DNA of 32,443 bases, taken from sequence record BK067788.1; one strand, 5' to 3'. The notes under the pieces were generated by a model. The model was not told the origin of the DNA. It was given only the letters and a program-made list of their open reading frames with translations, and did no database searches. Shown piece by piece: positions 1-32,443 of the stretch (position 1 is its first letter; each line of letters begins with the position of its first letter). The translations under genes and the position numbers were made by a program.

Positions 1-186
1 CCTGATAGCCTGCATTCTGTTAGATTCTTCTTTTTCCAGTCTTTCCTTCATGGCCTTTAATGATTCAAAGTCTTTTGGGATTCGTTTTTCTTTTATATAT
101 TTGACTAACTTCTTGGCTAGAAATACTGTTAGTGCTTTTAATGCGTCTGCAAGTTCGTCTTTGTTTTGTTGTTTTTTTCTAGTCAT
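1..186 (-). CDS. 5' part of a basic helical protein (62 codons, MTRKKQQNKDELADALK...NRMQAIR), open at base 1; continues in frame at 32443 if circular
   Basis: Manual translation: ATG at 186, exactly 62 sense codons, no stop before base 1. Confidence 0.7.
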   Translation of the reverse strand, partial: MTRKKQQNKDELADALKALTVFLAKKLVKYIKEKRIPKDFESLKAMKERLEKEESNRMQAIR

Positions 187-332
187 AGTGCAGCATATCC
201 TTTTATGATTTGGTATAGCTTCTGATAATCTTCTTTATCTCCACCAAGTCTTATTATTGTCTGGATTGGTCCGTGGTGGCCTACTGTTACTTCGTTGTAT
301 GCCTGTTTCATTTGTTCTTGTGTTAATTTCAT
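183..332 (-). CDS. Small hypothetical protein, 49 aa (MKLTQEQMKQAYNEVTVGHHGP...)
   Basis: Manual translation; stop overlaps the next ATG (ATGA). Confidence 0.6.
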   Translation of the reverse strand: MKLTQEQMKQAYNEVTVGHHGPIQTIIRLGGDKEDYQKLYQIIKGYAAL

Positions 333-422
333 ATCTTCTATACAATACCACTTATCATAAACAATTGTATGTTATTTTGTATTACAAACAAGTTTTGTAT
401 TCCTAGAGTGGAAACAAAGGAC

Positions 423-548
423 TTATCTAAAATAGGCACACTTGCACATTTTGTTTTCATCTGATATATGAGTACAGTATTTTGTGGTTCCTTTATGCTT
501 TGATTCTGGATGATTACAGCCTCGACACTTTAGTTCGTTTAGGTCCAT
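423..548 (-). CDS. 41-aa Cys/His Zn-binding micro-protein (MDLNELKCRGCNHPESKHKGTTKYCTHISDENKMCKCAYFR)
   Basis: Manual translation; same C..H..H..C..CxC..aromatic pattern as the N-termini of 1433..1861 and 26306..26797. Confidence 0.7.
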   Translation of the reverse strand: MDLNELKCRGCNHPESKHKGTTKYCTHISDENKMCKCAYFR

Positions 549-744
549 AATTAAAGCCAATAGACTTTCATGAAATCTTTAGTTTAAAAGTATTTGTGCT
601 TGTCGAGTACAGTTACGCACACACATACACACAAAAATACGAATGTTTCAAAAAATTAATTGTAAAATGTAATATTTAGAAATTATTATTCTAGAATCAG
701 CAACATCTATACTATTCACACAAATTCATTGGTACGGTACTCGA

Positions 745-1251
745 CTATATTTTAGGATGAGAATCATAGCTTGGTTCCCTGCCTTTTACGAAGATATGCA
801 AGTTACCATCAGCCCAAGCTATAGGTTTACTGAATGGTCCTTCCTCAGAACATAATGGTCTTAGATACCGATGGATTGTTTCTGTAGATACCCCCACAAC
901 ATACGCACCACTATCGATGATTTCATCTAAAGCATAATGATAATTGTTTTCGTACATCTTTCCTATTATCCATTGCCTGAAATATGGTTCTTTGATTAGG
1001 TTCTTTTTATGTTCTGCACTTGCATTTTTGGTGTCTATTTTTTCTTTAGATAACTCATCTATACGGTTACAGCTAGGGCAAAGCAGTTTCATGTTTTCTA
1101 TTTTTAATGGTCGTTCATATTTGATTTCATGGATCTGTAATATTGAGACTTCGGATTCAGTCTTTTGGCATAGCTGACAGAAAGCACCATCTCTTTTACA
1201 TAATTCAGGGTAGAAATGATCCCTTTCTCTTTTGTTTAGTTGGCTAGTCAT
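745..1251 (-). CDS. HNH-like nuclease domain with a helical (possibly winged-helix) C-terminus
   Basis: CQLC...IHEI...LLCPSCN His-Me finger pattern followed by a helical region. Confidence 0.55.
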   Translation of the reverse strand: MTSQLNKRERDHFYPELCKRDGAFCQLCQKTESEVSILQIHEIKYERPLKIENMKLLCPSCNRIDELSKEKIDTKNASAEHKKNLIKEPYFRQWIIGKMYENNYHYALDEIIDSGAYVVGVSTETIHRYLRPLCSEEGPFSKPIAWADGNLHIFVKGREPSYDSHPKI

Positions 1252-1436
1252 CGTAGTATCTCTCTCTCATATTGTTTCTGTTTTTGTATATTATCAACCT
1301 CTTGTATTGATTCTGGATGATTAATCTTGTACACTTCATAGCAGATGAAATCATATTCTGTATAAAAGCATTCATCGGAAAAGCCTTTCTCTTTTAATGT
1401 TAAAATGTATTCAGTAGATTGTAAAAAGAAATTCAT
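1248..1436 (-). CDS. Hypothetical protein
   Basis: ORF track; coupled by ATGA overlaps on both sides. Confidence 0.55.
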   Translation of the reverse strand: MNFFLQSTEYILTLKEKGFSDECFYTEYDFICYEVYKINHPESIQEVDNIQKQKQYEREILR

Positions 1437-1861
1437 TGGTATTTCTCCAAGACAAATTGATAAGTAGCATTCTCTTTCATTGCTTTTTCTGTTAATAATT
1501 CTTCATCATCAGGTCCATACTTTTCTCTGTTATGTTGTACTAATAATTGCCTGCAACGCCTGATAGATTCTGGATCATCCAATGTTTTAATAACATCATT
1601 TGATATTATATTCAGTTTTGAAACAAAGTGCCAATATAAGAATACAAAGTCCTTATTTTTTAGGTTCTTTGATTCAGGGATGTTTTCTAATATGTACTTG
1701 ACTTTATCTTCGACTTGCTCTAATTGCTCTAGATATTTTTGGTGTCTTGGAATAACACTTTGATTATCTTTTAGTTCTTCATATTGCATACACCAACAAC
1801 CTGGATATGTACAGACTTGAGTTTCCCAATCATGATTAGAATGTCCACACTTACAAGTCAA
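1433..1861 (-). CDS. Hypothetical protein with N-terminal CxCGH..H..C..CxC Zn module
   Basis: MTCKCGHSNHDWETQVCTYPGCWCMQY. Confidence 0.7.
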   Translation of the reverse strand: MTCKCGHSNHDWETQVCTYPGCWCMQYEELKDNQSVIPRHQKYLEQLEQVEDKVKYILENIPESKNLKNKDFVFLYWHFVSKLNIISNDVIKTLDDPESIRRCRQLLVQHNREKYGPDDEELLTEKAMKENATYQFVLEKYQ

Positions 1862-1977
1862 GCTTTATGACTCCTAGCAAGTACACAGTTCTTAGCTTGA
1901 TCCATCGTATGCCTATCTTTTCTTTTACCGCAATTATCACACATGACAGATTCTTGCAATTCTCTTATCTTTCTCAT
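1858..1977 (-). CDS. 39-aa putative Zn-binding micro-protein (MRKIRELQESVMCDNCGKRKDRHTMDQAKNC...)
   Basis: Manual translation; CxxC..H..C; overlapping stop/start coupling. Confidence 0.55.
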   Translation of the reverse strand: MRKIRELQESVMCDNCGKRKDRHTMDQAKNCVLARSHKA

Positions 1978-2041
1978 ATAAAGTCCTCGTCTGGATCTGG
2001 TTCCATTTCAAAGTCTGGATCATTTTCTTCAATGTCTAACT

Positions 2042-2697: not shown

Positions 2698-2823
2698 GAT
2701 ATTAGAAATGGAAACACAATACCTAAACCAAATATGAAATAGAAAAAGGATTTCATAATACTTTGACTCCTACTTTTCTTTGCCAATATCTAATACGATC
2801 AATTAGCCGTTTTGTTTCTATAG

Positions 2824-4953: not shown

Positions 4954-6876
4954 TCATAGTATTCTAGAACGTTTTGATTGTACGAATCTTCCAGTAGATT
5001 GTTTAGATTGTTCGGATTCTGATTTAGATATTGTTCTTTGAGAATAGCTTAGCTCACTTCTTTTATAGGTTCCAATTATACTAGCCTCAGGTACGTTACC
5101 AACAAATTCTCGTCTAAAGCCTCCCTTGCTTACTTTGCCAACTAGCCCCCCTCCTCCACCTACTCCTAAGACTCCTAGATCCGGTGGTCTTTTTTTATCT
5201 GTGGTTGTCTCTCCTGGTGGTGGAGTTTTGGTTGGTGGTGGTGTTGGTTTTGGTGGAGGTGGAGATGGATTACCTGGAATTTTTGTAACTGTCAATAAAT
5301 CAGTTATTCCAATTCCACCCTGATCCTGTTTTTGAGATTGTTTGGTTATAGTTATAGGAACTGGTGGAACTAGAGTTGGAAATGGTTTTGGTTTTTGTTC
5401 TGTTGTCTGTCTTGGTTTTAGAATTGGAACTGGTGGTACTGGTGTTTGTTTTTGTTCTTGCCTTGGCTTTCCAGGTTCTTTAATATATCTTAATCCAGTT
5501 CTTTCTATCAAAGATTGTTCTTGTTTTGCTTTTAATTTTTCTTCTGTCTTTCCAGTTTGTTCAGTCTTTGCTTTCTCCTGATCCTTTAGAAACTGTTCTT
5601 GTTTGGATAATTGTTTCTGTTCAAATTCTGGTTTTTGTTTTTGAACTGTTTTGGTAACTTGTTTTTCTCTTACTATTTGTTCTAATCCTTTTCCGGCTGA
5701 AACTGTCTTTTCTGTTGGAGTTGTAGGAGGTCTGCCAGTTCCTTCTAGGATTCCAGTACCACCCTTGCTACTTGATACTACTTTACCTGGTCCCACTCCT
5801 AACTTTACGGTTATCTCTGGTGTTGGTGTAACTTCTTTGCCTTGTCTTGCCATCTCAGGCGGTGGTGATTTCATCTTTTCATTTATCATTGACTGGATAT
5901 TCTTTTCAGTCCTGAACTTGTCGGTATATTTTGGAACATTAAGGCCAATATCTGAAGTGCCAACTTTGGCACCTGTCTCGGCTGCTTTTGGTGCTTCCTT
6001 TGCAAATGCCTTTGTAAAGAAACTGGATATTTCTTTCCCGGCTGATATTGCACCTTTTTCTAGAGAACCTATTGGTACAAATGCAAATACATCAGCTAGA
6101 CTTGTAGAAGGTACTTCTCCCCCTTGGGCTTTTTGTCCTGAAAATGGAACTTTAAGAAAACTAGATGCTTCACCTGTTTGTTTTTCAGATGTCGGTGTAA
6201 ATGTTTTGAATGTCTTTCCAAACAAAGTTGTTACTCCTGTTTCGCTTTGTGTTGTTTTTGTAGAAGGTACTACTTGGACAGTTGTAACTTTTTCAAGTGG
6301 TGGTAATCCTTGACTTGCCCTTAATGCGTTTGTCTTGTCTAGATTTGCCTGTGTTGCCCTTATTACTGGACTTGGACCTGATTTCAATACTGTTGTAGGT
6401 TGTGAAGTTTTTTCTGTTGTTTGTGGCATTACTGCGGTTCTCATTTGAGATATAGGAGTACCAGACACAGGAGTTCCGAATGATATTCTTCCTCCTCCTT
6501 GTGTCATTGGCAATACTGGTCTTTCCATCCTTTGACCTTGCGATGTAACAAAACTATTTGGCACTGGTGTTCCAAAGGAACCATAAGAAAATGATCCTGA
6601 TTTTATTGCAGCTTCTCTAGCTTGTGCGAATCTGTCATTACTTGAACCTACTCTTGAAACATGCTCTTCTACCATTCTTTGCTGTTCTATCTTTTGTGCT
6701 TCTGCTCTTACTGCTGCCTCTTCCGGTGTACCTGTCTTTATAGCACTAGGAGCTTGCTGTCTTTGTTCTTGTGTTGCCTGGTTTTCTCTTTGTGCAGCTA
6801 AGAGCCGTGCCTGTGCTGCCGCCTTTTCTGTTGGTGATGCGGGCTGAAATTGATTAGAACCTCCATAAGTTACCAT
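4954..6876 (-). CDS. 640-aa low-complexity, Pro/Thr/Gln/Lys-rich, probably disordered protein
   Basis: Long ORF; PPPPKPTPPPTKTPPPG, poly-Gly and EQK-rich segments; no TM or signal peptide seen. Confidence 0.75.
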   Translation of the reverse strand: MVTYGGSNQFQPASPTEKAAAQARLLAAQRENQATQEQRQQAPSAIKTGTPEEAAVRAEAQKIEQQRMVEEHVSRVGSSNDRFAQAREAAIKSGSFSYGSFGTPVPNSFVTSQGQRMERPVLPMTQGGGRISFGTPVSGTPISQMRTAVMPQTTEKTSQPTTVLKSGPSPVIRATQANLDKTNALRASQGLPPLEKVTTVQVVPSTKTTQSETGVTTLFGKTFKTFTPTSEKQTGEASSFLKVPFSGQKAQGGEVPSTSLADVFAFVPIGSLEKGAISAGKEISSFFTKAFAKEAPKAAETGAKVGTSDIGLNVPKYTDKFRTEKNIQSMINEKMKSPPPEMARQGKEVTPTPEITVKLGVGPGKVVSSSKGGTGILEGTGRPPTTPTEKTVSAGKGLEQIVREKQVTKTVQKQKPEFEQKQLSKQEQFLKDQEKAKTEQTGKTEEKLKAKQEQSLIERTGLRYIKEPGKPRQEQKQTPVPPVPILKPRQTTEQKPKPFPTLVPPVPITITKQSQKQDQGGIGITDLLTVTKIPGNPSPPPPKPTPPPTKTPPPGETTTDKKRPPDLGVLGVGGGGGLVGKVSKGGFRREFVGNVPEASIIGTYKRSELSYSQRTISKSESEQSKQSTGRFVQSKRSRIL

Positions 6877-13194: not shown

Positions 13195-13354
13195 ACCAAG
13201 ATTTAAAGAAACAATATCAGTTGAAGATGTCAGACAGAGGCATATTGACTTAGAAGTAGCACAAGAAGAACACTTCAAAGCAATTCAAGACATTAGGAAA
13301 GAAATGGGTGAACTATTTGACACCTATTGGGATTTGGTTCATCTTGACAACTAA
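13184..13354 (+). CDS. Small coiled-coil protein (MTTKPRFKETISVEDV...)
   Basis: Part of track ORF 13139..13354; later ATG preferred because of the upstream micro-ORF. Confidence 0.55.
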   Translation: MTTKPRFKETISVEDVRQRHIDLEVAQEEHFKAIQDIRKEMGELFDTYWDLVHLDN

Positions 13355-14231
13355 AATAGACGGTCTGGCACAATACCATATTCGTGAAGAACCAAACCAA
13401 ATAATTGAACGTGCATTAGATTTAGGAAAAACTAATCTATATTGTCTATTTTCAGGAGGGAAGGATTCTACTACTGCTAGTGATTTGGTAGCAACTCAAT
13501 ATCCTGAATATTACAAAGGAAACGTCTATACTATGACTGGAATGTCTCTAAGAGAATCAAGATGGTTTGTTACTCAACAATGCCATGAACAGAATAGACC
13601 TTTGTTTTTTACATGGGCTAAAAAAAACTACGTTGATTGGGTTTTAGAAAATGGATTTGGTGGGCAAGGTGTACATAATATTGTTATGTTCAAACTAAAG
13701 TTTCTTTCTTGGAGAATGTTTCTACGAGGTAAAGAAGATAAATCTGCATTTATCTCAGGAGTGAGAAAAAAGGAATCTGTCAGACGTAGTAACAGATTAG
13801 CATATAAGAATCCAATAGACTTTGATAATAAAACATGTATGATAAAACCAATTTTCTATAAGAATGGTCTTTGGTTATGGGATTACATAGCAAAACAAAA
13901 TCTAAAGGTTTCACCTGTAAATGATATTCTTGGAATATCAGGAGATTGTTTATGTGGATGCTTTGCAGAGAAACATGAGATTAAGTTAATTGAGAAATAT
14001 TATCCATATATGTTCAGTGCTATAAAATGGCTAGAAAAAGAGATTCAAAGACGTGGTAGTAAAACAGCATTAAAACATCCAACTTGGGGATCAGGTGCAT
14101 CATTAGAGGACATTGAAATGCAAACTCAGATTAAGAACTGGTTTGCAGAATGTGAAGAAGATGAAGGTTTGGAACCAAGCACATTATCTATCGAAGAATA
14201 TTGTACGGAATCTTGTTCGGTGACTGTCTAA
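13344..14231 (+). CDS. PAPS-reductase-family (adenine nucleotide alpha hydrolase / PP-loop, DndC/CysH-like) protein
   Basis: LFSGGKDS PP-loop, GVRKKESVRR, KPI...W..I, C-terminal DCLCGCF Cys cluster; likely TTG start at 13344. Confidence 0.85.
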   Translation: MTTKIDGLAQYHIREEPNQIIERALDLGKTNLYCLFSGGKDSTTASDLVATQYPEYYKGNVYTMTGMSLRESRWFVTQQCHEQNRPLFFTWAKKNYVDWVLENGFGGQGVHNIVMFKLKFLSWRMFLRGKEDKSAFISGVRKKESVRRSNRLAYKNPIDFDNKTCMIKPIFYKNGLWLWDYIAKQNLKVSPVNDILGISGDCLCGCFAEKHEIKLIEKYYPYMFSAIKWLEKEIQRRGSKTALKHPTWGSGASLEDIEMQTQIKNWFAECEEDEGLEPSTLSIEEYCTESCSVTV

Positions 14232-18672: not shown

Positions 18673-18673
18673 T

Positions 18674-20407
18674 TTAGCTTATTTGTTTTATAATTCCATC
18701 TATATTATAGGTAATTGCAGTATATGTTCCGGCTGGATCTGTTCCTATTGATATAGTTGTTCCGGCTTTAGCTCTTATTGATAAAGACTGTCCATCCCCA
18801 ATAGGTCCGTTAGTATTTGTGAATGTATTTTGTATAGCTGCGGTAGGAGTACTAAAAGGCATTTTAACAGTTCTTGCTACTGATGTATCATCTGTATAGT
18901 TCATTAAAATACTAAATGAATATGTAGTCGATGTTGTTGCATGAATATTAAATGATACTTCAAAATCTCCGTCACTGGGACCAACTGTATAACTTGTTAC
19001 TGTTCCACTAGCTCCTGTTAGTCCTGTTAATCTTCCTGATCCGTATATTGCGGGTATTCCCCATCCCTTAGTATTGATTGAATTATATTGCGTTATTTTT
19101 GTCTTGAATAAAGTATCTACATAATTGGTAATACTAGTTTGTGCCATCTGCATTACTTGTATTAGATTTAAAGACCCACCTTTAGCAGTTCCAGTATTAC
19201 CATCAGATATATCAAATTCAATACCCTGAGTTAATGATGAGCCTCCTTGCATTTGAATATGTGAACCACCCCCTCCTTGGCGTGATTTCCAACCTGATGA
19301 ATAATACAGATTTTGGTCAACATCAGTGTAAAAGCTTGGGGGTGAACCGATTGCAAAAAAATCTAAAATATTAAATGGTAAACCGTCAGTGTTTGTACTT
19401 GTTCCTAAGTTTGCTTGATTAATATTATTTATATTGTTATTATTTACATTAATATTTGAACCTGACATGGTTATTCCACCACTGAATGTTTTTCCACCTG
19501 TTGCAGTTTGTGTTCCGTTTAACTCCATAACTCCGGCTGCATCTATTCCAACTTTGATGTTATTGGTGCTGTTTGTTATTGTAGTATAGCTTGGCTGTCT
19601 GATTACAGATATTGACGGTCCTGTCTGACTGTTAACGGAAGTGATTGCGGATAAGATACCAGTATTTGAGATGGTTCTAGAATTACCTGAACCTGATATG
19701 CCTATGCCTGAACCAGCTACCAGAGTATCTAAAACCTGTTTACCATTCTGAAAGAATCTGGTTCCATTCACATCTGCTAATCCGGTAAAATTCTTATTTC
19801 CTCCGGCTGCATTACCACCTAAAGTTAGTGCGTTTAGTGTAAGACCTTTAGTTATAGTCTGAGTTGATCCACCAGTAACTACAACATTATAAGCCGTATT
19901 GACTGTTATGGTATTTCCTCCGGTATTTGTACATGTAGTATTACCAGAGACACAGGCAATAGTCAGGGCACCTGTCAAGGCATTAAGTGAAGATACTCCG
20001 CTGGATGTTCCTGTCGCTGATACAGTTACGTTAATCTGGTTTCCTGAACCTGAATTTTTTAGATTCACTGTGGCACCTGTTCCGTTTATGAAATTGATCT
20101 TGTAACCGCCAGAGTTTATGTTTACGTTATTGGCCTGAGTTGTGTTATAGGTTCCAGAAGCTTGTGATATGCTGGAAGATATTTGTAGAGTGTGGGTAGC
20201 ATTGTTTGATTTTACTTGGATGCCTGATCCTCCTGATACAGTTAGTGGCATTGAAAAGTTAACTGCGGATATTGTACCGTTGTCAGAATGGATCTTATCA
20301 AAGGCGTTTGTAGGAGGCACGTTCATGTATGGTCCTTCATCTGCAAATGTTGTATTAGGAATTATCAGGATTGATATAAACAGTATAGATAAGATAATCT
20401 TCTTCAA
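18674..20407 (-). CDS. Fibre/adhesin-like virion glycoprotein, 577 aa
   Basis: Signal peptide (TTFA); G/S/T/N-rich beta repeats; VSSLNALTGALTI and ITSVNSQTGPSI tail-fibre-like motifs; many sequons. Confidence 0.7.
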   Translation of the reverse strand: MKKIILSILFISILIIPNTTFADEGPYMNVPPTNAFDKIHSDNGTISAVNFSMPLTVSGGSGIQVKSNNATHTLQISSSISQASGTYNTTQANNVNINSGGYKINFINGTGATVNLKNSGSGNQINVTVSATGTSSGVSSLNALTGALTIACVSGNTTCTNTGGNTITVNTAYNVVVTGGSTQTITKGLTLNALTLGGNAAGGNKNFTGLADVNGTRFFQNGKQVLDTLVAGSGIGISGSGNSRTISNTGILSAITSVNSQTGPSISVIRQPSYTTITNSTNNIKVGIDAAGVMELNGTQTATGGKTFSGGITMSGSNINVNNNNINNINQANLGTSTNTDGLPFNILDFFAIGSPPSFYTDVDQNLYYSSGWKSRQGGGGSHIQMQGGSSLTQGIEFDISDGNTGTAKGGSLNLIQVMQMAQTSITNYVDTLFKTKITQYNSINTKGWGIPAIYGSGRLTGLTGASGTVTSYTVGPSDGDFEVSFNIHATTSTTYSFSILMNYTDDTSVARTVKMPFSTPTAAIQNTFTNTNGPIGDGQSLSIRAKAGTTISIGTDPAGTYTAITYNIDGIIKQIS

Positions 20408-20431
20408 TGTATATTTTTCAAAGTCAATAGG

Positions 20432-20447
20432 TTTTAAAGTTTACTTG
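20432..20447 (-). promoter_or_regulatory. Putative promoter CAAGTAAACTTTAAAA (copy 1)
   Basis: TATA-like CTTTAAAA about 25-32 nt upstream of TTG 20407; exact 16-nt copy at 26851..26866. Confidence 0.5.
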
Positions 20448-20449
20448 TA

Positions 20450-20857
20450 TTATAGTTCACTTTCTTCTGATACTCCCTGTCTTGCAGGCTTGGTAAGTAA
20501 GAACATTATTTGCTGGAATATATAGAAAGATAGTATGATAAATAACATTCCATGAAAAGGAATCCATACATTGTTTGCCAAGACAATTTGATTAGTCTGC
20601 GTTGTAGCTTCAGTCCAAACTTGAGTTGTGTTTACTGATCTTGTGATACTATTTGTTGCTATTGTAGATACATCAATATGTATTCCAGAACTTGCCAATA
20701 TACCACATGCTATTACAGAAGGTATTAGAAATATTGCCCTGACTAATGCAAGTGAACGGGTAATAGGAACTTCTTTTATCACTGAAACAATGAGAACCAG
20801 AACGCCTGCATATCCTATCAGCCCGTATGTAATGAACTCGGCAATCGATATATCCAT
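20450..20857 (-). CDS. Three-TM structural-module membrane protein
   Basis: Three hydrophobic helices; N-x-S/T loop. Confidence 0.75.
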   Translation of the reverse strand: MDISIAEFITYGLIGYAGVLVLIVSVIKEVPITRSLALVRAIFLIPSVIACGILASSGIHIDVSTIATNSITRSVNTTQVWTEATTQTNQIVLANNVWIPFHGMLFIILSFYIFQQIMFLLTKPARQGVSEESEL

Positions 20858-20860
20858 ATT

Positions 20861-21277
20861 CTAAATACCTCGTAAGATTGCTATAACAGTTCTGATTAAT
20901 AGAAAAGTATACAGACCAATGAATCCCATTACAAATATCGTTGGCACTCCAAAGTCAACCATTACTGCAAATATGTAAAATCCAGTTGTAAGCAAGATAA
21001 GGTTCCAAGCTATGTTTGCAGCATATCCTAGATATGTAATAGGATCGCTTGCCTTGTTTCGACATTGATCAGTTGTACATGTAGAATTCACCTGGACTTG
21101 ATTTAATGTATTGGTATGAATTGCAGTTATCAATCCGTTCTTTACTGGCACTCCTTGAAAGTTTGTCATTGGAGTATGGAATACATCTGATAAGACAAAT
21201 TGTACTCCTAGCATTGAAAAGGAAACTGCATAGACGAACATTACGGCAATTGTTGATTTTTCTTGTAGGAATGCCAT
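20861..21277 (-). CDS. Multi-TM structural-module membrane protein
   Basis: N-terminal and C-terminal hydrophobic helices, Cys pair in the loop. Confidence 0.75.
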   Translation of the reverse strand: MAFLQEKSTIAVMFVYAVSFSMLGVQFVLSDVFHTPMTNFQGVPVKNGLITAIHTNTLNQVQVNSTCTTDQCRNKASDPITYLGYAANIAWNLILLTTGFYIFAVMVDFGVPTIFVMGFIGLYTFLLIRTVIAILRGI

Positions 21278-21280
21278 TAC

Positions 21281-22701
21281 TCAAAAACCGCCACTCTTGC
21301 GTGTTGAGAGGATAGCTATTAACACACCTATCGTTACAGCACCTGCTATAAAAGTAGGAAGTGCAATGAATCCAAAGAAGGCACAAGCTCCTATTATCGC
21401 TACGGAAAATATTACTCCTACTGTTTCGTTTACTCTATTAAACCCGATCATGGATATTATTATGATACCAATGGTAACAAAATCTAATATGCCTATCTGT
21501 CCATGAGTTCCATATGTTCCGTTTCTAAGATTCTGAACCTGTTGCTGGAATGGAAACGTACTTTGAGTCAATACATATTTTGCATTAGAACCTGTCAAGG
21601 AATCTGTACAAAGAACATTGACTATCTCGTTATTGAGGTTATGAAACTTGAAAGAACTGTTTGAATTTGATATATCAAAAGGAACTGAAGGCAATGGCGG
21701 TCCATATGTATTATTTGTCATGGCAAATGTATAATTCATGTTACATTCCATGCTCATGATATTTGGATATATTACTGAAAGCCTTGTGTCTGTTGTATTT
21801 AGATCAGTTCTTACAAAGTAAATAGGAACCACATTATTGTTTGTAAAGTTAAAGTTTAGGTTTCCTGTCACGAAACTTCCATAATCCAATACAACATGGT
21901 TTGTCGTTACAAGACTAATTCCTGTTGATGTCTGTAATATTGCCTGTTCGTAATAAGTCTGTATTCCTGTTGGCTGTGAATTATCCTGTAATGATACTGG
22001 TATGCTGGTTTGTATTCCGGCTGTTAACTGGACTGGATTGCTGGTAAGATCCTGAAACGATACTAGATTGCCGTTTGTGTTCCATAGTAACAATGCCGTA
22101 ACGTTTGCAGTTGCCGGAGTTGCTAGCTTGATACTTGGATCATTAAAGATGCCATTGTTTGCCAAGACATAACCTGTAACATTAAAGTTTGATGTAGTTA
22201 TGGTTCCACCACCCCATGATAGAAACATGTCAAGATGAGATCCTACATTTATAGTAGTACAGACCAATCCATTACAAGTTCCATAATTCCAAGTAGAACC
22301 AAATGGTTGATCTGTTCCATCTAGCTTTACCTGTTGCAACTGTCCAAGTACGGTCATGGTTACTCCACCAGTTCCCAAGTCAGTAATATGAGCAGTAAAA
22401 TTATCACCTTCATTGAACCCTGTTATGTTTGCATTTATCTGGTGTCCAGACCAAGCAAGATCATAATATGGACTACCCAAAAATATATCAGTAGAATTTG
22501 CTATAATACTTGTGACATTAAAGTTTGGTGAAACATCTGCGGTATAATTTACGTTTCCGTTTCCAATAGTGGTTCCAGGGTATACGGTTACAGCATATGC
22601 ATTTTGTGATATGAAAAGACTAACTATGATACCAGTCAGTAGAAAAAAAAAAATCTTTGCTTGTTCAACAAGGAATGTCTTATGGTATCTTTATTAAACA
22701 T
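21281..22701 (-). CDS. Large membrane-anchored virion glycoprotein (~473 aa), interrupted by a 1-nt frameshift in a T11 run
   Basis: ATG 22701 frame (MFNKDTIRHSLLNKQRFFFFY*) and downstream frame (LLTGIIVSLFISQNAYA-VTVYPG...) join into one signal peptide with 12 or 9 T; beta-rich ectodomain with sequons; C-terminal TM helices. Confidence 0.7.
22643..22653 (-). repeat. Homopolymer A11 (+) / T11 (coding strand)
   Basis: Read directly: ag-aaaaaaaaaaa-tc. Confidence 0.9.
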
Positions 22702-23207: not shown

Positions 23208-23810
23208 TTACTGTTTATGTGGGCATATTCCTTTATTAATCTGTCTTGCACAATTACAATTCCAACAGAGAGTTTGATATCCTTCGGGATAATTCTGCTT
23301 TTTTAACAAAGCCCATAATCTAACACCTGATTTTTTATTTGGATTTCTTCCTCTATCATTTTCTTCTCTTCCATTAATATGATCGAGAGTTAGAAATGCT
23401 ATTCCTTCTTGTTTACAACAAATACATTGTAATTTTCCATTCCCATAATGAGTTAAAACTTCAATCTTTATTTCAACTTTATATATTTGAAAACGTTGTT
23501 TTTGTTTAATAATATATCTATCTCTATTTTTGTGCCATCTTTCCCTATTTTTTTGTTGCAATACCTCTTTATTTTGCTGATAATAGTCTTTATCATAATT
23601 TGGTTTGCTTTTCTTCCATGTTGATTTATAATCTTTCCACGATTGAGTTTTGTTTTTTATTCTTTGTCTTTCTGCTCTGCACTTTTTACATGCTCGTTTA
23701 CCAATTGATAATTCATATTGTAATAAATTATCTTCATTTAATTCATGACCATTCTTACAATGAGTTTTCTTTTTGTTTTCATTAGGAAGTGAGATTTTAT
23801 TTTCATCCAT
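23208..23810 (-). CDS. HNH endonuclease with an N-terminal THCKxGH Zn module
   Basis: KTHCKNGH...RACKKC; CICC...LTLDHING...LCWNCN. Confidence 0.8.
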   Translation of the reverse strand: MDENKISLPNENKKKTHCKNGHELNEDNLLQYELSIGKRACKKCRAERQRIKNKTQSWKDYKSTWKKSKPNYDKDYYQQNKEVLQQKNRERWHKNRDRYIIKQKQRFQIYKVEIKIEVLTHYGNGKLQCICCKQEGIAFLTLDHINGREENDRGRNPNKKSGVRLWALLKKQNYPEGYQTLCWNCNCARQINKGICPHKQ

Positions 23811-24300: not shown

Positions 24301-24786
24301 TTATTTAATATCTCGTTTTTTGCATACATTGTTTCTCCATCTCCATTGATTATGAACCAAATTTCTATGATCTTTAACTTCTCTAGTAGCATTTTTTCTT
24401 CGTATGCTCTGACTTTGATTTTTACATTTAAGACAACGTCTATGACCTTTTGTTAAGGCATATTTTTCTAGATTATCACCTGATAATTCATGACCTCGTT
24501 TACAATGAGTCTTCTTTGCGTTTTGAGCAGCTAAACCATTTCCACGTAATGTATTCTCCTGTTGCGTTACAGCTTCTAAATGCTCAGGATTGAAACAATT
24601 TCTTTCACTACAAAGATGATCTATAACCAATCCTTTAGGAATTTGACCTTTGAATAATTCAAACATTAATCTGTGAACATTAACAACTGCATATCCATAA
24701 CGGTCTATTCTTCCAGTCCACTTCCAACAATTACCTTCTTGTTTAAAATACTCTAATTGCTTTACTATCTTCTCTAACTCTTTCAT
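24301..24786 (-). CDS. HNH homing-type endonuclease (HNH_3-like) with a C-terminal THCKRGH module
   Basis: CWKWTG...GY...VHR...IDHLC...CFNPEHLEAVTQQEN; KTHCKRGH...RRCLKC. Confidence 0.85.
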   Translation of the reverse strand: MKELEKIVKQLEYFKQEGNCWKWTGRIDRYGYAVVNVHRLMFELFKGQIPKGLVIDHLCSERNCFNPEHLEAVTQQENTLRGNGLAAQNAKKTHCKRGHELSGDNLEKYALTKGHRRCLKCKNQSQSIRRKNATREVKDHRNLVHNQWRWRNNVCKKRDIK

Positions 24787-24817: not shown

Positions 24818-25198
24818 TTATTGTTCCGCTGTTTGCGATACCTTAATATACCATATCAAAATTCCAAATCCTAATCCTACCATTACAAAGGCAAAGTTGA
24901 GAAATGGAACCGGAAATACGAAGTACGATAATGGCAGCAAGAATATTCCTATGACAATTGGATAAACCATTTTATGATATTTGATATAACTGAACATGAC
25001 AAAGATAGCAACTAGGATCATGGAGAAATTTCCTCCTGTTATCCATTGCCAGCCAATCAAGGAACCGGTTAGAAAGTCTTTACCTAGACCGCAAGCTTGC
25101 CAGGTGTTTGAGGCTGTGTAATTGAGAAAGCACGGAGTCGTGGAGTTTACTATGATTGTTTGTAGTGTTACTAAATGTAACAGCAAATAATCAAGCAT
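24818..25198 (-). CDS. Multi-TM structural-module membrane protein
   Basis: About three hydrophobic helices; N-terminal Cys pair and sequons. Confidence 0.75.
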   Translation of the reverse strand: MLDYLLLHLVTLQTIIVNSTTPCFLNYTASNTWQACGLGKDFLTGSLIGWQWITGGNFSMILVAIFVMFSYIKYHKMVYPIVIGIFLLPLSYFVFPVPFLNFAFVMVGLGFGILIWYIKVSQTAEQ

Positions 25199-25234
25199 GA
25201 TATTATTTAACTTCCTTTTTCTTATCTTTTTGTC

Positions 25235-25378
25235 TTAGAATCGTGATTTCCAGTCCTTCCTATGGGATCGGTCCTCTTGTTTCTTTTGTCGATTTTTATA
25301 ATATCTTCTGCCGTATACAATCATGAAAATTCCTATTACGGCACTTGCATAAATTATCTGAGCTGTATTGAATATCAT
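25235..25378 (-). CDS. 47-aa single-TM micro-protein with a basic tail
   Basis: Manual translation MIFNTAQIIYASAVIGIFMIVYGRRYYKNRQKK...; ATGA coupling. Confidence 0.6.
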   Translation of the reverse strand: MIFNTAQIIYASAVIGIFMIVYGRRYYKNRQKKQEDRSHRKDWKSRF

Positions 25379-26304
25379 TGTGCCGGAATTGGTGGCTTGT
25401 AGGAATTAGCCATCTTTTGCATGTTAGGGGATAACTGGTTCATCTGTACGTCACCTTTGGCTAGAGCATCATGCAGCTTTTCGGGTGTTGGATATTGTGC
25501 AAAGACCTGTTGATCCGTAAGTTTTCCGTTTGGTGTACTTGTGGTTGGTGTGTTCCCTGGTAAGCTTGGCAAGATTCCGCTTAATGGATTTCCTCCACCT
25601 CCGTTTGATATTAGATAGAATCCCATGAATCCGATTGCACCTACGATAGCAACTAGGGCAATTATAATCATCCAAGGTTTTTTGGCGTCTGTCTTTACGT
25701 TTGTTACCTTCTTTGCTACAAAATCCGTTCTTTGTATTGCGTTGTAAATGTCACCTAGATATTTAGGATCTGTACCTACAAAGTCATCTTCTAGAAACTC
25801 AGTCGTATCTTTTACAGGCGTTATTACTTGTTCAACGGCTATGTTTTTGAAATAAGTTTCAATGTTTTGGGCTTGGGAACTGTAATTCTTTCCTCCGCTT
25901 GAAATTGCAGTTACTATCTCTTGTACATTATGGGATTCAAATGCCTTTTGTTGTTTCTCTCTCTGTGATAATATCTTGAATACTCCGAACATTGTCATGT
26001 TGACTCGTGGTAATCCATTTGTTTCTAATAGATCTTCTAGTTTTTTGGTATGGTCTGGTGACATTGGTTTGTAATGTTTAGTTGAATAGAATAGAATACG
26101 AATAGACCTTGCAGCAGTTTCTTTGTATGTTATGATACGGGAATCTTCAATCTTGAAACAATAAACCTGTTTATCTATGTCAGTAACAAAATAATCACCT
26201 ATTGTGTGTTTTATTGGTACAAAATGACCTCTACCTGATGAATCTCGTATGATTGCGGTAATGTATTTTGGACTAAAGACGTCACGATGGCTAATAACAC
26301 CCAA
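25375..26304 (-). CDS. Single-pass membrane protein with a large N-terminal soluble domain
   Basis: TM near residues 210-232; Pro/Gly/Thr linker. Confidence 0.75.
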   Translation of the reverse strand: MGVISHRDVFSPKYITAIIRDSSGRGHFVPIKHTIGDYFVTDIDKQVYCFKIEDSRIITYKETAARSIRILFYSTKHYKPMSPDHTKKLEDLLETNGLPRVNMTMFGVFKILSQREKQQKAFESHNVQEIVTAISSGGKNYSSQAQNIETYFKNIAVEQVITPVKDTTEFLEDDFVGTDPKYLGDIYNAIQRTDFVAKKVTNVKTDAKKPWMIIIALVAIVGAIGFMGFYLISNGGGGNPLSGILPSLPGNTPTTSTPNGKLTDQQVFAQYPTPEKLHDALAKGDVQMNQLSPNMQKMANSYKPPIPAQ

Positions 26305-26797: not shown

Positions 26798-26850
26798 TTC
26801 TTGGCATTTCCTCCTAAACTTGGCACTATCATAAACAAAAACTCAATGGT

Positions 26851-26866
26851 TTTTAAAGTTTACTTG
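26851..26866 (-). promoter_or_regulatory. Putative promoter CAAGTAAACTTTAAAA (copy 2)
   Basis: Identical to 20432..20447; upstream of ATG 26832 (12-aa uORF coupled to 26797). Confidence 0.45.
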
Positions 26867-27219: not shown

Positions 27220-27693
27220 GTGCCATCGATTCCAGAAAGTGACAAGACTATAACGGATATGGTTGATGTGGTCTTAGAATCATGGAAAGAACCACAAAAG
27301 ATAGAAACTGAAGATGGAAAGTTTAGAACAGAACGTGTAATAAACGAAAGGCGTGCTTGGTGGCAGACTCACCACATAGGAACAAGATCATTAGGTGAAT
27401 TGGCAAAAGAATTAGAAAATCTTAGGAATTTATTCAAAAGTGCAGGTTATCACATGACGGCATACAGAGCAGATGTTTTACAGAAACAAGGTGCTATGTT
27501 ATGCCAAGTTTATGATTATATGGTAGATGCAAAGAGTTCAGAATCATTAAGAGATGAAAATAATACAAATCTTACATTACTTGCAATGTTAGCCAAGGCC
27601 AAGACAGAAAGACAATTTAGTGTCAAGGGAGAGTTGAACAAATCTGTCATGGATGGCATATTAGGCAGAAAGGCTAACGAACAAGCAGGCTAA
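27220..27693 (+). CDS. Hypothetical helical protein
   Basis: ORF track, GTG start. Confidence 0.7.
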   Translation: MPSIPESDKTITDMVDVVLESWKEPQKIETEDGKFRTERVINERRAWWQTHHIGTRSLGELAKELENLRNLFKSAGYHMTAYRADVLQKQGAMLCQVYDYMVDAKSSESLRDENNTNLTLLAMLAKAKTERQFSVKGELNKSVMDGILGRKANEQAG

Positions 27694-28635: not shown

Positions 28636-28636
28636 A

Positions 28637-28949: not shown

Positions 28950-30083
28950 TTAATTAGTTATATCATTATTTAATTGTTCTGTCGGTAATAATTGATCAAT
29001 AGGCGTGGTTTTATCATCGTCAGACAATACTCCATCAAGCATTTTTTTAAGCTTGGTTCTTGTTATTTTGAACCCATAATGAGTAGCTATGTCTTCTAGT
29101 GATATTTCCTTCTTATCTAATGCCTTGTATAGATACTTTTTGCATGTAACAATAGGCTTTGAATAAACATTAATGCCATTTTCCATCATTATTAGCTTGC
29201 ATGTTGCTCTAACTACATATTCAGTGAATTTCTTATTTGTTTCGTTAATGAACTGATCTACTGGAATTTCACTAAAATATAATTTTTTATTGGCTAGGCT
29301 GCAAATAGAGCATATTTTATCAATCCATTCCCTAACAGGAAATATAACATATCTTAACGAACTGTTATTAAAAAACAGGCATACCACGAATGGGTTCTTG
29401 TAATTGTATATGAAAAAGCCTTTAGCTGCAAAGGCAAATGTACATTTCTGTTTTGATGTCATTTCTACATATTTTTTCTCAAAATCTTCTATTTTGCTTG
29501 TGTATCTAGTTCCAACTATATTTATCATGTTTTCCTTCTCACTTGAACCAATAGAGGTAAAAAATCTAAAATTTGCTTGTCTTAGATACTTGTCAAGACC
29601 TAACGTATAATGATAATCATAAATTAGGATGATCTTGTAATCTCCATTTTTCAGGTGTCGTATTTTGGTTACTGCATTTTTTACTTCTTCTATGGCCTTT
29701 TTGTTTGCCAGGAAAGATAGGTCATGAAAATACAAAATATAGTTTGCTGGATCTAGAGCTTCCAGAGTTCCTTTCATATCATAAAACTCTTCCTCTCCAA
29801 ATTCTCTATAAGCAAAAGGTACGCATCCTAGAGACTCACTCATTTTATGGATCAGATGTGCGCATGTTTTAGCCAATGAAGTTTTACCTGTTGAAGGTTC
29901 GCCCACTATACCTACCTTTACAACATCCAGGGATTTTGTAGTATTGAGTATTTCAGTTATAGCAGCTCGTAGGCTATGGTTCCTGATCATATCACAGCCT
30001 TTCCATTTTATTACAGTTGGTGCATTCTTCTTGGATAGATGATCGGGGTTTTGTAATTGAACCTCAACATGTCTGATAACCAT
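28950..30083 (-). CDS. P-loop ATPase (viral AAA-like; packaging or replication role unresolved)
   Basis: Walker A GEPSTGKT, Walker B ILYFHD; C-terminal CSIC and HTH-like SLEDIATHYG. Confidence 0.8.
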   Translation of the reverse strand: MVIRHVEVQLQNPDHLSKKNAPTVIKWKGCDMIRNHSLRAAITEILNTTKSLDVVKVGIVGEPSTGKTSLAKTCAHLIHKMSESLGCVPFAYREFGEEEFYDMKGTLEALDPANYILYFHDLSFLANKKAIEEVKNAVTKIRHLKNGDYKIILIYDYHYTLGLDKYLRQANFRFFTSIGSSEKENMINIVGTRYTSKIEDFEKKYVEMTSKQKCTFAFAAKGFFIYNYKNPFVVCLFFNNSSLRYVIFPVREWIDKICSICSLANKKLYFSEIPVDQFINETNKKFTEYVVRATCKLIMMENGINVYSKPIVTCKKYLYKALDKKEISLEDIATHYGFKITRTKLKKMLDGVLSDDDKTTPIDQLLPTEQLNNDITN

Positions 30084-30673
30084 TATGTATCTAATTCCTC
30101 TCCTGTCTTTCCTTCAAGTTGTTCTAATTCTGATCCATCCTTGGGAGTATAATCACGCCTGAACTTTGCAGCCTTGGCCTCCAATTCATCTAGTAACTTC
30201 CAGCACCAATTCTGGAATTTAATATCAAACTGTCTGCGGTCTGTAAGACTGTCCTTTCGTTCTGGTGGCTTTGGTACTATCCCTAAGAAGCTAGGTTCTT
30301 CAAGTTGATACTTTATCATCTCAGTTTCTACCAGACGGTTTACATGGTTACACTTGCCACAATGCCAAACCTTGTCATACTTTTCTTTGGTGAATACTCC
30401 AATGATTAATGGATTTAGAAGCTTCTCAATCTGCATATCTTTAACCTCTATCTCTTCATCACAGTACGGACATTTGGCGTTTAGCTTCTCTTGTGTCTTG
30501 GCCTCATATTCTATTGTGGATATTTTAACTCTATAATCTTCAGGCAAACATCCGTTGAAAGCATACAAGGAACCTACTGCGGCATCATATCTTCCATTTT
30601 CCATATTGAAGATAGCCTGATTTCTATACTTGATGAAAGCGGTATTAATATCAGGTAAAGACGCTTGTGGCAT
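30083..30673 (-). CDS. Zn-ribbon-containing protein co-transcribed with the ATPase
   Basis: KCPYC...WHCGKC; TAATG coupling. Confidence 0.7.
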   Translation of the reverse strand: MPQASLPDINTAFIKYRNQAIFNMENGRYDAAVGSLYAFNGCLPEDYRVKISTIEYEAKTQEKLNAKCPYCDEEIEVKDMQIEKLLNPLIIGVFTKEKYDKVWHCGKCNHVNRLVETEMIKYQLEEPSFLGIVPKPPERKDSLTDRRQFDIKFQNWCWKLLDELEAKAAKFRRDYTPKDGSELEQLEGKTGEELDT

Positions 30674-30674
30674 T

Positions 30675-31133
30675 TTATGAAATCCACTCCAAAGTCATAG
30701 ATTTTCTAAATGGTCTTAAGCGTTGATTTTTATTAAAACATATTCTACAAGCTCTTTTACCTCTACTAATTTCATATTTAATAAGATTATCACCTTCCAA
30801 TAAATGACCACTTGGACAATACTTTTTTGCTTTGTTTATTGCTGAGAATCCGATTCCTCTACTAGCATTAACTCCTTGTGTAACTGCTTCCAAATGATCT
30901 GGATTTACACACGAGTAATTACCACACAGGTGATCTATAACCAATCCCTGAGGTATCTCACCTTTGAATAACATATAAGATAGTCTATGGGCAAAGAAGA
31001 ACTTACCTCTTACATATAATACTCCATATTGTAACCAGTTCTTTGCACCTATCCATGACCAACAATAAGTATCTTCATCAAATCTAATCTTAGATAGTAA
31101 TTGATTAGGTAAGATGGCATATCCCTTTTGCAT
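30675..31133 (-). CDS. HNH homing-type endonuclease (HNH_3-like), paralog of 24301..24786
   Basis: CWSWIG...AHR...GEIPQGLVIDHLC...CVNPDHLEAVTQ; KYCPSGH...RACRIC. Confidence 0.85.
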   Translation of the reverse strand: MQKGYAILPNQLLSKIRFDEDTYCWSWIGAKNWLQYGVLYVRGKFFFAHRLSYMLFKGEIPQGLVIDHLCGNYSCVNPDHLEAVTQGVNASRGIGFSAINKAKKYCPSGHLLEGDNLIKYEISRGKRACRICFNKNQRLRPFRKSMTLEWIS

Positions 31134-31190
31134 AATGTTCCTTCTGACCTATAGATAAAAAGATTTTCTTTCTTGAGAGAACCCTTACCT

Positions 31191-31228
31191 ATCCCTAAAA
31201 TGTTAAACAATCCTTAAAATGTTAAAAT
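31191..31228 (+). repeat. Two tandem 19-bp imperfect repeats (ATCCYTAAAATGTTAAA..)
   Basis: atccctaaaatgttaaaca / atccttaaaatgttaaaat. Confidence 0.8.
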
Positions 31229-31246
31229 CATGCCTAAATTAATTCA

Positions 31247-31276
31247 TTTATCACATTGTACCAACAATGTTAAAAA
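31247..31276. other. Candidate recombination core site (12-bp arm, 6-bp spacer, 12-bp arm)
   Basis: TTTATCACATTG-TACCAA-CAATGTTAAAAA; 10 of 12 positions pair; 21 nt upstream of the recombinase ATG. Confidence 0.45.
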
Positions 31277-31297
31277 CATCCTTGATTATTCCATTAC

Positions 31298-31912
31298 ATG
31301 CAAGCTAGAACCAACTACATAACCCCTGATCAGTTCAAACAATTGATTGATGGAGTAGATACATTAGAACTTAAGAAGTTTAATCATGAGGATGTAAAGA
31401 TGTTATTCAAAGTTTGTTATTGGATGGCACTTAGGATAGGAGAAGCTTTGAAGATTAATGTGGAAGACTTTGATTTTGAAGTTATGCAAGTATATCTAGG
31501 AAAGACCAAGACAGAGAAACAAGGATTTGCCAAGATACCAGAGGTATTTAGATTAGAGTTATTGGAATACCTACTAGATAAGAAAGGTCCATTGTTTCCA
31601 GGCATGAATAGATTTATTGTTTCTTATTGGTTAAAGACTCTAGGTAAGCGTTACAAGATAAAGGCTTTGACTACTTCACAAGAAGATACCGAAGAAAAGA
31701 CAATCACCCACATCTTTAGAAAATCAATGGCTAAGGATATGTTCTATGGTATACATGGAGAGAAAGCACCTTTGACCTTTGTTTCTGATACTTTAAGACA
31801 TAAGGGTAAGAATAGACTTGCAGCTACACAGGAGTATCTTAAGATAACAGGCGAAGATCTAGATGATTTTTGGAAGCGTATAGCTAAGAAAGAAGAAGAA
31901 TCTCAGGTATGA
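31298..31912 (+). CDS. int: Minimal tyrosine recombinase/integrase
   Basis: Catalytic set R (ALRIGE), K (KTK), HxxR (HIFR), H (LRH), Y (TQEY); 204 aa. Confidence 0.9.
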   Translation: MQARTNYITPDQFKQLIDGVDTLELKKFNHEDVKMLFKVCYWMALRIGEALKINVEDFDFEVMQVYLGKTKTEKQGFAKIPEVFRLELLEYLLDKKGPLFPGMNRFIVSYWLKTLGKRYKIKALTTSQEDTEEKTITHIFRKSMAKDMFYGIHGEKAPLTFVSDTLRHKGKNRLAATQEYLKITGEDLDDFWKRIAKKEEESQV

Positions 31913-32169
31913 AAGTAATCAAACTTGTTATCTCTTCTCTTTAGTCTTTGCTCTGTTAGATACCTAGCAATACGATACAGGCCATTGAACTTTACTCCCC
32001 ATATCAGGAATACGCCTAGACCAATGTTTAGAAAGTCTTGCCAGTTCCAATGAAACCAAGGAACGATAAAGTTTAGGCTTGACATGACAATCATAAAGCC
32101 TGCACCGATTAGGTATAGTCTGGAATGCTTGATCTTGATGTTTTCATTGTCTTTCCACTTTCTAGTCAT
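31903..32169 (-). CDS. Two-TM membrane protein, convergent with the integrase
   Basis: Two hydrophobic helices; 10-nt 3' overlap with int. Confidence 0.65.
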   Translation of the reverse strand: MTRKWKDNENIKIKHSRLYLIGAGFMIVMSSLNFIVPWFHWNWQDFLNIGLGVFLIWGVKFNGLYRIARYLTEQRLKRRDNKFDYFHT

Positions 32170-32290
32170 TATCTATACCTCAATCTAACATCTGATTTTT
32201 TCTTTTTGGTTTCTTTACTATAATCTATTGTAATTATAACAGCCATCTCTTACTTGTTTCACTGTTCCAGTAATGATAAGTATTTCTATT

Positions 32291-32443
32291 TCAGTTTACC
32301 AGGTCTTCAATTGTATTTCGTTGTTCAATCCATGTCTTATAAGGCAAGTGCAAGACTTTCTTAACTTTTCTTATGCGGTCCTGTCTTTCCCAAACTTGTC
32401 TTTGTTTCTTTTTCAATAGTAACAGTCTGACTTGTTCATGCAT
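32291..32443 (-). CDS. 3' part (50 aa) of the protein starting at 186 if circular, or a standalone small ORF
   Basis: MHEQVRLLLLKKKQRQVWERQDRIRKVKK...DLVN*. Confidence 0.6.
   Translation of the reverse strand: MHEQVRLLLLKKKQRQVWERQDRIRKVKKVLHLPYKTWIEQRNTIEDLVN

Follow-up and report, generated by a model that had tools for sequence, protein, structure and literature searches.

The 32,443-bp stretch of DNA analyzed here (BK067788.1; hereafter the window) is the complete circular double-stranded DNA (dsDNA) genome of NTM1, an uncultivated and already described Nitrosopumilaceae spindle-shaped virus from Michigan rhizosphere metagenomes. The best overall explanation of our results, to which we assign a probability of about 0.85, is that this known genome would encode a shell built from a small helical-hairpin protein, would persist as an episome copied by the host replisome and would be kept monomeric by Xer-like resolution.

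Identity and classification of the genome

Exact string comparison revealed that the window equals BK067788.1 base for base. When the ATPase and the capsid candidate were used as tblastn queries against a phage and archaeal virus collection, 11 records were recovered, all named "Nitrosopumilaceae spindle-shaped virus", among which BK067788.1 was 100% identical to the window over 32,443 bp. This record is a third-party-annotated assembly (isolate NTM1, rhizosphere) with 81 open reading frames (ORFs), named ORF1 to ORF81 and given no functions. [quoted passage not shown] The family was first described by Ni et al. 2024 (PMC10866085), and was erected because its member viruses fitted no older family.

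The first-pass annotation of this DNA, made from the letters alone, had proposed a probably new lineage. This proposal has to be given up, since the species is already published and classified by the ICTV, and the relationship to a described virus is not merely one of clustering together but of complete sequence identity. The same annotation had stated that the virus fits neither Thaspiviridae and His1 nor Fuselloviridae, which agrees with our results: the genome is circular, has no polymerase and belongs to a family of its own.

For comparison within the family, we used the genomes of NTT1, NYM1, NBD1 and NBC1 (hereafter the four compared genomes).

Circular topology

Circularity had previously only been inferred and is now directly documented. 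First, the IMG/VR source contig (IMGVR_UViG_3300025915_000012; 32,542 bp) consists of the window plus a terminal 99-bp copy of positions 1-99, that is, a direct terminal repeat. Second, at least four other data sets yielded NTM1 at 100% identity, with four contigs of 32.5-32.8 kb coming from separate assemblies; three independent assemblies crossed the window ends at 100% identity, with no extra sequence in any aligned stretch. Third, the sister records NTT1 and NTT2 were identical after rotation and reverse complementation (0 mismatches over 30,340 bp). Inverted terminal repeats were absent, as the window ends were 24% identical when compared as inverted repeats. The GenBank record labels the molecule linear, flags ORF1 as partial and splits the gene at the junction into ORF1 and ORF81, and the word "circular" occurs nowhere in the main text of Ni et al. 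2024 (PMC10866085).

Replication genes

Every ORF of at least 130 amino acids (aa) in the window was compared with Pfam; for the majority of the large ORFs, PHROGs and/or NCBIfam were searched as well. None of these ORFs had a family match to a polymerase, primase, Rep, MCM or PCNA. Searches with the primase-helicases of the family gave nothing in the window (tblastn, E > 1), and no such gene was found in NTM1 or NTT1 (E > 0.7). The earlier statement that no polymerase, primase or Rep can be recognized was thus borne out by both the family scans and tblastn.

On the other hand, NBD1, NBC1 and NYM1 encode a D5_N/DUF5906 primase-helicase (D5/P4-like), with loci at 14635-16530 of L005, 21353-23464 of L006 (NBC1) and 32023-34068 of L004. 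At least four further family records matched it (the three listed are all Marefusivirus), which gives at least seven genomes in the other three genera. In NBD1 the primase-helicase gene overlaps the end of the PAPS-reductase-like gene, whereas NTM1 keeps the PAPS-reductase-like gene without the helicase. Judged from gene content, the missing polymerase, primase and Rep are a trait of the genus Terrafusivirus and not of the family, a difference between genera that is not discussed in the main text of PMC10866085. Since both Terrafusivirus genomes (NTM1 and NTT1) lack the primase-helicase, their circular episome would be handed over entirely to the host replisome, which would carry out all of its replication.

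A divergent intergenic region (12542-12608) between the two largest transcription blocks has a guanine-plus-cytosine (GC) content of 46%, compared with about 34% overall, and lies at the minimum of the cumulative GC skew. Its composition and position make it a candidate control or origin region.

Tyrosine recombinase and lifestyle

The recombinase reported by the first-pass annotation was found to be a genuine member of the tyrosine recombinases, with PF00589 and PHROG matches and all catalytic residues intact. Its residues 7-180 align with positions 2-165 of the 172 positions of the PF00589 profile, and R46, K71, H138, R141, H168 and Y180 are invariant in 15 aligned homologues, all of which consist of the catalytic domain only. 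Of the 11 published family genomes, 10 encode this recombinase of about 200 aa. The exception is NYM1, which has a different, XerD-like recombinase that is listed only in the supplement (PMC10866085); the words integrase, recombinase, temperate and provirus are absent from the main text of that paper. Three copies of AATGTTAAA occur at 31199-31275, just upstream of the recombinase gene, and the same box lies about 30 nt upstream of the NBD1 recombinase; it is a putative promoter or protein-binding site.

The claim that the virus is temperate had the recombinase as its sole basis and found no support in further analysis. When 185,579 species-representative genomes were scanned with a profile of the ATPase, no provirus came to light. 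The scan returned a 17-residue chance match in L017 and three small contigs made up entirely of viral core genes, namely L014 (DUJB01000067.1), L015 (NYTT01000055.1) and L016 (CAYQNM010000060.1), which had been binned in metagenome-assembled genomes (MAGs) of Nitrosopumilaceae, Flavobacteriales and Saccharibacteria, respectively. Among the 271 clusters listed for the ATPase, capsid protein and recombinase, none was on a contig longer than 34.6 kb (no core gene was thus found on a contig above 35 kb), and several were on contigs of 25-35 kb. The window contains no tRNA gene and no T-arm-like or tRNA-like attachment (att) fragment above chance; it has no long inverted repeats, and no dif-like palindrome was found beside the recombinase gene.

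The strongest competing explanation is nevertheless that NTM1 is a temperate virus with a fusellovirus-style integrase, whose prophage is replicated passively, which would explain the missing replication genes. It is favored by an intact recombinase that is subject to purifying selection and occurs in 10 of 11 family genomes, with the remaining one, NYM1, carrying its XerD-like enzyme instead, and by the general observation that circular archaeal viruses with tyrosine recombinases, such as Fuselloviridae, commonly integrate; a genus without the primase-helicase would also be tolerable under passive prophage replication. However, the genome scan yielded nothing but three small mis-binned viral fragments, many of the listed clusters are on genome-length contigs with none beyond that size, neither the window nor the published tRNA matching (PMC10866085) offers a tRNA link, and the recombinase has no core-binding or arm-binding domain. 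We therefore regard the temperate explanation, and with it a stable lysogenic state, as doubtful, and favor a virus that persists as an episome, is produced chronically and uses its recombinase to resolve multimers or, only rarely, to integrate. The conserved recombinase would most likely keep the episome monomeric by Xer-like resolution, with integration as a rare event at most, and virions would be released without lysis from a Nitrosopumilaceae-like ammonia oxidizer.

Capsid protein and virion shape

The putative major capsid protein (ORF63 in GenBank) has helices at residues 3-33 and 66-102 in an AlphaFold2 (AF2) model (predicted local distance difference test score, pLDDT, 67), in agreement with a hydropathy scan. 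Two invariant cysteines and N-glycosylation sequons are located in the loop between the helices, and the gene is preceded at about 25 nt by a TATA-like box. By blastp, the protein shares 47-74% identity with its counterparts in four family members, and by tblastn 43-68% with those of all 10 other family records. At least 709 homologous clusters (90% identity) were present in public metagenomes, together with at least 262 clusters of the ATPase. Thus, Nipumfusiviridae is far larger than its 11 genomes.

Outside the family, the capsid protein had no meaningful match in Pfam or PHROGs. A hidden Markov model profile of five capsid proteins found nothing at E <= 10 among all PDB sequences, including the SSV19 entry 7XDI. 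Foldseek searches of the AF2 model against PDB and BFVD gave no match better than E = 2; as Foldseek is poorly suited to bare helical hairpins, this outcome speaks neither for nor against an SSV-like capsid. No link to the capsids of SSV19, SMV1, APBV1, His1 or NSV1 was found (NSV1 was considered by its description).

A second two-helix membrane hairpin protein (ORF60) is kept in all four compared genomes with 44-70% identity, and its gene adjoins the capsid gene in NBD1 and NBC1; it is a possible minor virion protein. The first-pass annotation had described the two as paired hairpin capsid proteins. Both hairpins are indeed present; the pairing itself is unproven, as no homology between them could be detected, and paralogy was rejected (hhalign probability 0.06%).

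By analogy with SSV19, SMV1 and APBV1, the hairpin protein may build a helical shell with little or no lipid, of the spindle/bacilliform class. The spindle shape and the Nitrosopumilaceae host are both published inferences, and the spindle morphology was called hypothetical by its authors (PMC10866085). NYM1 was recovered from a virome fraction below 0.2 um (PMC10866085). Another explanation is that NTM1 is a virus of some other form, with a bacilliform shell as in APBV1 or a pleomorphic membrane-bounded particle, or else a plasmid exported in vesicles. Capsid proteins with a two-helix hairpin are shared by viruses of rod, bacilliform and spindle shape, a rod shape was weighed in PMC10866085 itself, hydrophobic segments are present in 25 of the 66 ORFs retained as likely genes, and the structure and profile searches gave no specific tie to VP1 of SSV19. 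Even so, we consider a non-spindle particle improbable, and a hairpin shell of the spindle/bacilliform class is retained here.

Host

The published prediction of a Nitrosopumilaceae host is based on iPHoP scores of 0.55-0.67 with no CRISPR or tRNA match, and was called limited by its authors; the best BLASTp matches were to Nitrosopumilaceae proteins, and hairpin capsid proteins of the NTM1 kind are known only from archaeal viruses (PMC10866085). In the window, GC content varies between 32% and 40%. TATA-like boxes were observed about 25-35 nt upstream of operon-leading genes, as the first-pass annotation had noted, in an archaeal layout, and Shine-Dalgarno-like GGAGG motifs precede several internal genes. 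No Rfam family matched the window. The GC content, the archaeal promoter layout and the published BLASTp matches are consistent with the Nitrosopumilaceae prediction. The first-pass guess of a Nitrososphaeria host agrees with that prediction, which with such iPHoP scores is itself weak.

That NTM1 might be a bacterial virus mis-assigned to archaea is suggested by the binning of L015 and L016 in bacterial MAGs (Flavobacteriales and Saccharibacteria). However, these contigs are 2-8 kb long with a GC content of 32-34% and carry viral core genes only, without host flanks, so that these bacterial assignments are almost certainly mis-binning; together with promoter boxes at -25 to -35, the capsid type and the Nitrosopumilaceae BLASTp matches, this makes a bacterial virus very unlikely. 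Finally, the linear label and partial ORF1 of the GenBank record might hint that the window was cut from a larger element whose polymerase lies outside it, a candidate that we rejected as having virtually no chance of being correct: the genome assembles as a circle and the window is therefore no part of a larger element, its ends being joined by the terminal overlap, the separate assemblies being of nearly the same length and the junction-crossing contigs adding no sequence.

Conserved core and the ATPase

Ten genes are common to NTM1 and the four compared genomes: g51, g52, g53, g54, the capsid gene, g59, g61, g64, the ATPase and the zinc ribbon. They comprise the capsid hairpin, the second hairpin, five other membrane or anchored proteins, the soluble g64, the ATPase and its zinc-ribbon partner. 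Further core genes recommended for Nipumfusiviridae, a zinc-binding protein and three proteins without assigned function (PMC10866085), are also present, as the zinc ribbon is g71 and g51, g52, g54, g59, g61 and g64 are kept in all four. The zinc-ribbon protein shows 30-41% identity in the four compared genomes.

The ATPase, correctly recognized as such by the first-pass annotation, has conserved Walker A and B motifs and a P-loop fold of the additional strand catalytic E (ASCE) type. By tblastn it matches every one of the 10 other family records, at 33-47% identity across 68-94% of its length. There was nothing useful in Pfam or NCBIfam and a weak clamp-loader match in PHROGs (E = 0.004), and the profile matched PDB sequences over the P-loop only. 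Foldseek searches with the AF2 model (pLDDT 76) gave weak and roughly equal matches to AAA+ proteins (ORC1, FtsH and NSF), HerA and the packaging NTPase B204 of STIV2 (E 2.5e-4 or weaker; TM-score normalized to query length 0.20-0.33). B204 was the sole target covered from end to end (TM-score normalized to target length about 0.5). We attempted to assign the protein to either AAA+ or FtsK/HerA, and Foldseek does not separate them. Because the genera with a primase-helicase also keep the ATPase, the protein may well act in morphogenesis or genome delivery, which we consider no less likely than a function in replication initiation.

Comparison with other viruses

Mean identity to NTM1 was 48.5% for NTT1, 38.8% for NYM1, 40.9% for NBD1 and 37.6% for NBC1, values that were computed over shared genes only, by a procedure other than the exact method of the ICTV authors. 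The closest relative is Terrafusivirus tennesseense of the same genus (NTT1, BK067791; NTT2, BK067783, is the same genome rotated), with 19 shared genes at a mean identity of 48%. NTT1 has the same order within the capsid, hairpin and glycoprotein module, the same block of recombinase, zinc ribbon and ATPase, and no primase-helicase. Unlike NTM1, it is 30.3 kb long, has no HNH genes around the capsid gene, encodes a fibre-like protein of 1012 aa instead of 577 aa, and contains a D12-class Dam-like methyltransferase in place of the NTM1 set.

Yangshanfusivirus (NYM1), Baiafusivirus (NBD1 and NBC1) and Marefusivirus share the core with NTM1 (capsid protein 47-59% and ATPase 32-47% identity) and, except for NYM1, the recombinase of about 200 aa. 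They differ in having the D5_N/DUF5906 primase-helicase and giant structural proteins of about 1,400-2,200 aa, and in coming from aquatic and not soil samples. In addition, NBC1 encodes an STT3/AglB-type oligosaccharyltransferase (9580-11373 of L006; Pfam 7e-28) that NTM1 does not have, which suggests that N-glycosylation may be virus-directed in NBC1.

Among other families, Fuselloviridae (SSV1 and SSV19) resemble NTM1 in their circular dsDNA, hairpin capsid, tyrosine recombinase, conserved ATPase, lack of a polymerase and dependence on the host replisome for replication. SSV integrases are about 335 aa long and are split on integration, whereas the NTM1 enzyme is a catalytic domain of 204 aa with a canonical HxxR box. 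No capsid sequence or profile similarity to SSV19 was detected. NTM1 also differs in its size (32 kb compared with about 15-25 kb) and in its mesophilic host, and no homologues of the SSV19 tail proteins were found (PMC10866085).

NSV1 of Thaspiviridae and NTM1 have the same predicted host group and genomes of similar size, and both encode DNA methyltransferases and a small capsid protein containing two hydrophobic helices; the linear genome of NSV1 has 176-bp inverted terminal repeats and encodes a protein-primed PolB as well as PCNA (PMC8491892). NTM1, set apart from NSV1 here by description, is circular and has neither inverted termini nor PolB or PCNA, and almost no proteins are shared with NSV1 (PMC10866085). 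His1 of Halspiviridae resembles NTM1 in its small hydrophobic capsid protein and belongs to the spindle-virus class, as NTM1 is predicted to do. Unlike NTM1, His1 is linear with a protein-primed PolB and a haloarchaeal host.

Other features of the genome

The coordinates of the genes discussed here are shown in Table 1.

Table 1. Positions of genes of NTM1 in the window and the evidence for each
Feature	Position	Strand	Evidence or remark
112-aa gene cut by window ends, N-terminal part	1..186	-	In frame with 32443..32291
HNH endonuclease, 168 aa	745..1251	-	Pfam HNH 9.4e-5; 40% identity to an NTT1 protein
Low-complexity P/T/Q/K-rich protein, 640 aa, with poly-Gly stretch	4954..6876	-	Only in Terrafusivirus genomes among those compared
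PAPS-reductase-like PP-loop protein	13308..14231	+	Pfam PAPS_reduct 1.2e-6; PHROG 424 1.7e-11
DPPY-motif DNA methyltransferase (N6-adenine or N4-cytosine type)	15240..15776	+	PHROG DNA methyltransferase 2.6e-11; GGKADPPY
Short C5-cytosine methyltransferase-like protein	17274..17957	+	Pfam DNA_methylase 3.8e-7 (N-terminal 78 residues only); PHROG 363 1.7e-15
Small secreted metzincin-like protein, 144 aa	18238..18672	-	HELGHFLGFEH (HExxHxxGxxH); signal peptide; adjoins fibre-like gene
Secreted Gly/Thr/Asn-rich fibre-like protein, 577 aa	18674..20407	-	Signal peptide from TTG 20407; 13 N-x-S/T sequons
Core membrane protein, three transmembrane (TM) segments	20450..20857	-	TM prediction
Core membrane protein, three TM segments	20861..21277	-	TM prediction
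Sequon-rich core protein, 399 aa	21281..22480	-	11 sequons; C-terminal double membrane anchor, TM segments at 326-395
Second two-helix membrane hairpin protein (ORF60), 89 aa	22708..22977	-	Layout like that of the capsid protein (hydropathy)
HNH endonuclease downstream of capsid gene	23208..23810	-	PHROG HNH endonuclease 5.5e-9
Putative major capsid protein (ORF63), 103 aa	23916..24227	-	Two long hydrophobic helices; Cys-Cys loop with sequons
HNH_3 endonuclease upstream of capsid gene	24301..24786	-	Pfam HNH_3 1.2e-16
Core membrane protein g59	24818..25198	-	Kept in all four compared genomes
Core protein g61, 309 aa, one TM segment	25375..26304	-	Kept in all four compared genomes
Core protein g64, 157 aa, soluble	27220..27693	+	Kept in all four compared genomes, identity 28-62%
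Family-defining P-loop (ASCE) ATPase with C-terminal CxxC domain	28950..30083	-	Invariant Walker A/B residues G61, G66, K67 and D121
Core zinc-ribbon protein, translationally coupled to ATPase	30083..30673	-	Weak Zn_ribbon_15 match
HNH_3 endonuclease between recombinase and zinc-ribbon/ATPase pair	30675..31133	-	Pfam HNH_3 2e-13
Minimal tyrosine recombinase, 204 aa, catalytic domain only	31298..31912	+	Pfam PF00589 Phage_integrase 3.5e-9; PHROG integrase 6e-18
112-aa gene cut by window ends, C-terminal part	32291..32443	-	Called whole (112 aa) in three other assemblies

An operon of sequon-rich secreted and membrane-anchored proteins spans 18238..22480 on the minus strand. The first-pass annotation had described it as a membrane glycoprotein operon with a fibre-like protein; the operon, signal peptides and anchors are present, and the term glycoprotein derives from sequon counts alone. 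The conserved part of the 399-aa protein, which had no family match, corresponds to the giant proteins of NYM1, NBD1 and NBC1, and the two proteins with three TM segments show 33-58% identity in all four compared genomes. The fibre-like protein, also without a family match, is 31% identical to ORF60 of NTT1 (1012 aa) and is a probable adhesin or tail fibre. Its GenBank start (ATG 20326, 550 aa) drops a clean signal peptide that is restored by TTG 20407 (577 aa); the latter is located about 30 nt downstream of a AAACTTTAAAA box (both starts and the box fall within 20326-20450), and the 31-nt AAACTTTAAAA box is found again at 26839-26869, where it precedes the gene at 26306-26797. The host-binding end of the virion may be formed by the fibre-like protein together with the other secreted and anchored proteins that are rich in sequons. 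The metzincin-like protein matched Pfam Peptidase_M10 below the curated cut-off (2.5e-4) and has no homologue in NTT1; it might help to breach the surface layer of the host.

No family match was obtained for g59, g61 or g64, and a 47-aa ORF lies within the core morphogenesis module 24818..26304 on the minus strand. The 640-aa protein, which had no family match either, is 34% identical over 151 aa to ORF36 of NTT1, and a protein of similar size (636 aa) occurs in the same neighborhood of L018, the resemblance being one of size and position.

The DNA-modification genes mentioned by the first-pass annotation are present and number three, the PAPS-reductase-like protein, the DPPY methyltransferase and the short C5-methylase-like protein being encoded on the plus strand. 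Homologues of the PAPS-reductase-like protein are found in NBD1 and NBC1. The methyltransferases and the PAPS-reductase-like protein probably shield the viral DNA from host restriction.

With regard to the four HNH endonuclease genes of NTM1, NTT1 has none at either position flanking the capsid gene, and the bracketing of the capsid gene by HNH genes is not discussed in the main text of PMC10866085. The HNH_3 gene next to the zinc-ribbon/ATPase pair is a paralogue of the one upstream of the capsid gene, with which it shares a 51-nt repeat (24607-24657 in the latter). It is missing from the relative L018, in which the ATPase shows 83% identity. The pattern looks like an invasion of NTM1 core modules by homing endonucleases.

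Implications for the family and its hosts

Several points weigh against the overall explanation proposed above. The host evidence is compositional and weak, and no virion has been observed for any family member. As far as the structural model goes, the fold match of the ATPase would suit a replication initiator as well as a packaging enzyme. The preference for resolution over integration rests on negative evidence, since proviruses may go unseen in MAGs and on short contigs, and integration does occur in fuselloviruses that have comparable enzymes.

A bolder proposal, which at present we would rather doubt than believe and hold slightly less likely than the temperate explanation, is that Terrafusivirus lost every recognizable replication gene and yet kept a minimal, catalytic-domain-only tyrosine recombinase of about 200 aa. 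If this is true and the recombinase integrates, NTM1 would be the first temperate spindle-type virus of ammonia-oxidizing archaea; if it resolves multimers, it would represent an unusually small virus-borne Xer-like system.

Ammonia-oxidizing archaea drive nitrification in soils and oceans, and to our knowledge very few of their viruses are known. As the genome is already on record, no new lineage is gained by our analysis. What it adds to the published description is the circularity of the genome, the near-universal recombinase, replication modules that depend on the genus and the apparent HNH invasion of the NTM1 core modules. They are relevant to the persistence of such viruses in hosts that grow slowly, and supply concrete targets for experiments.

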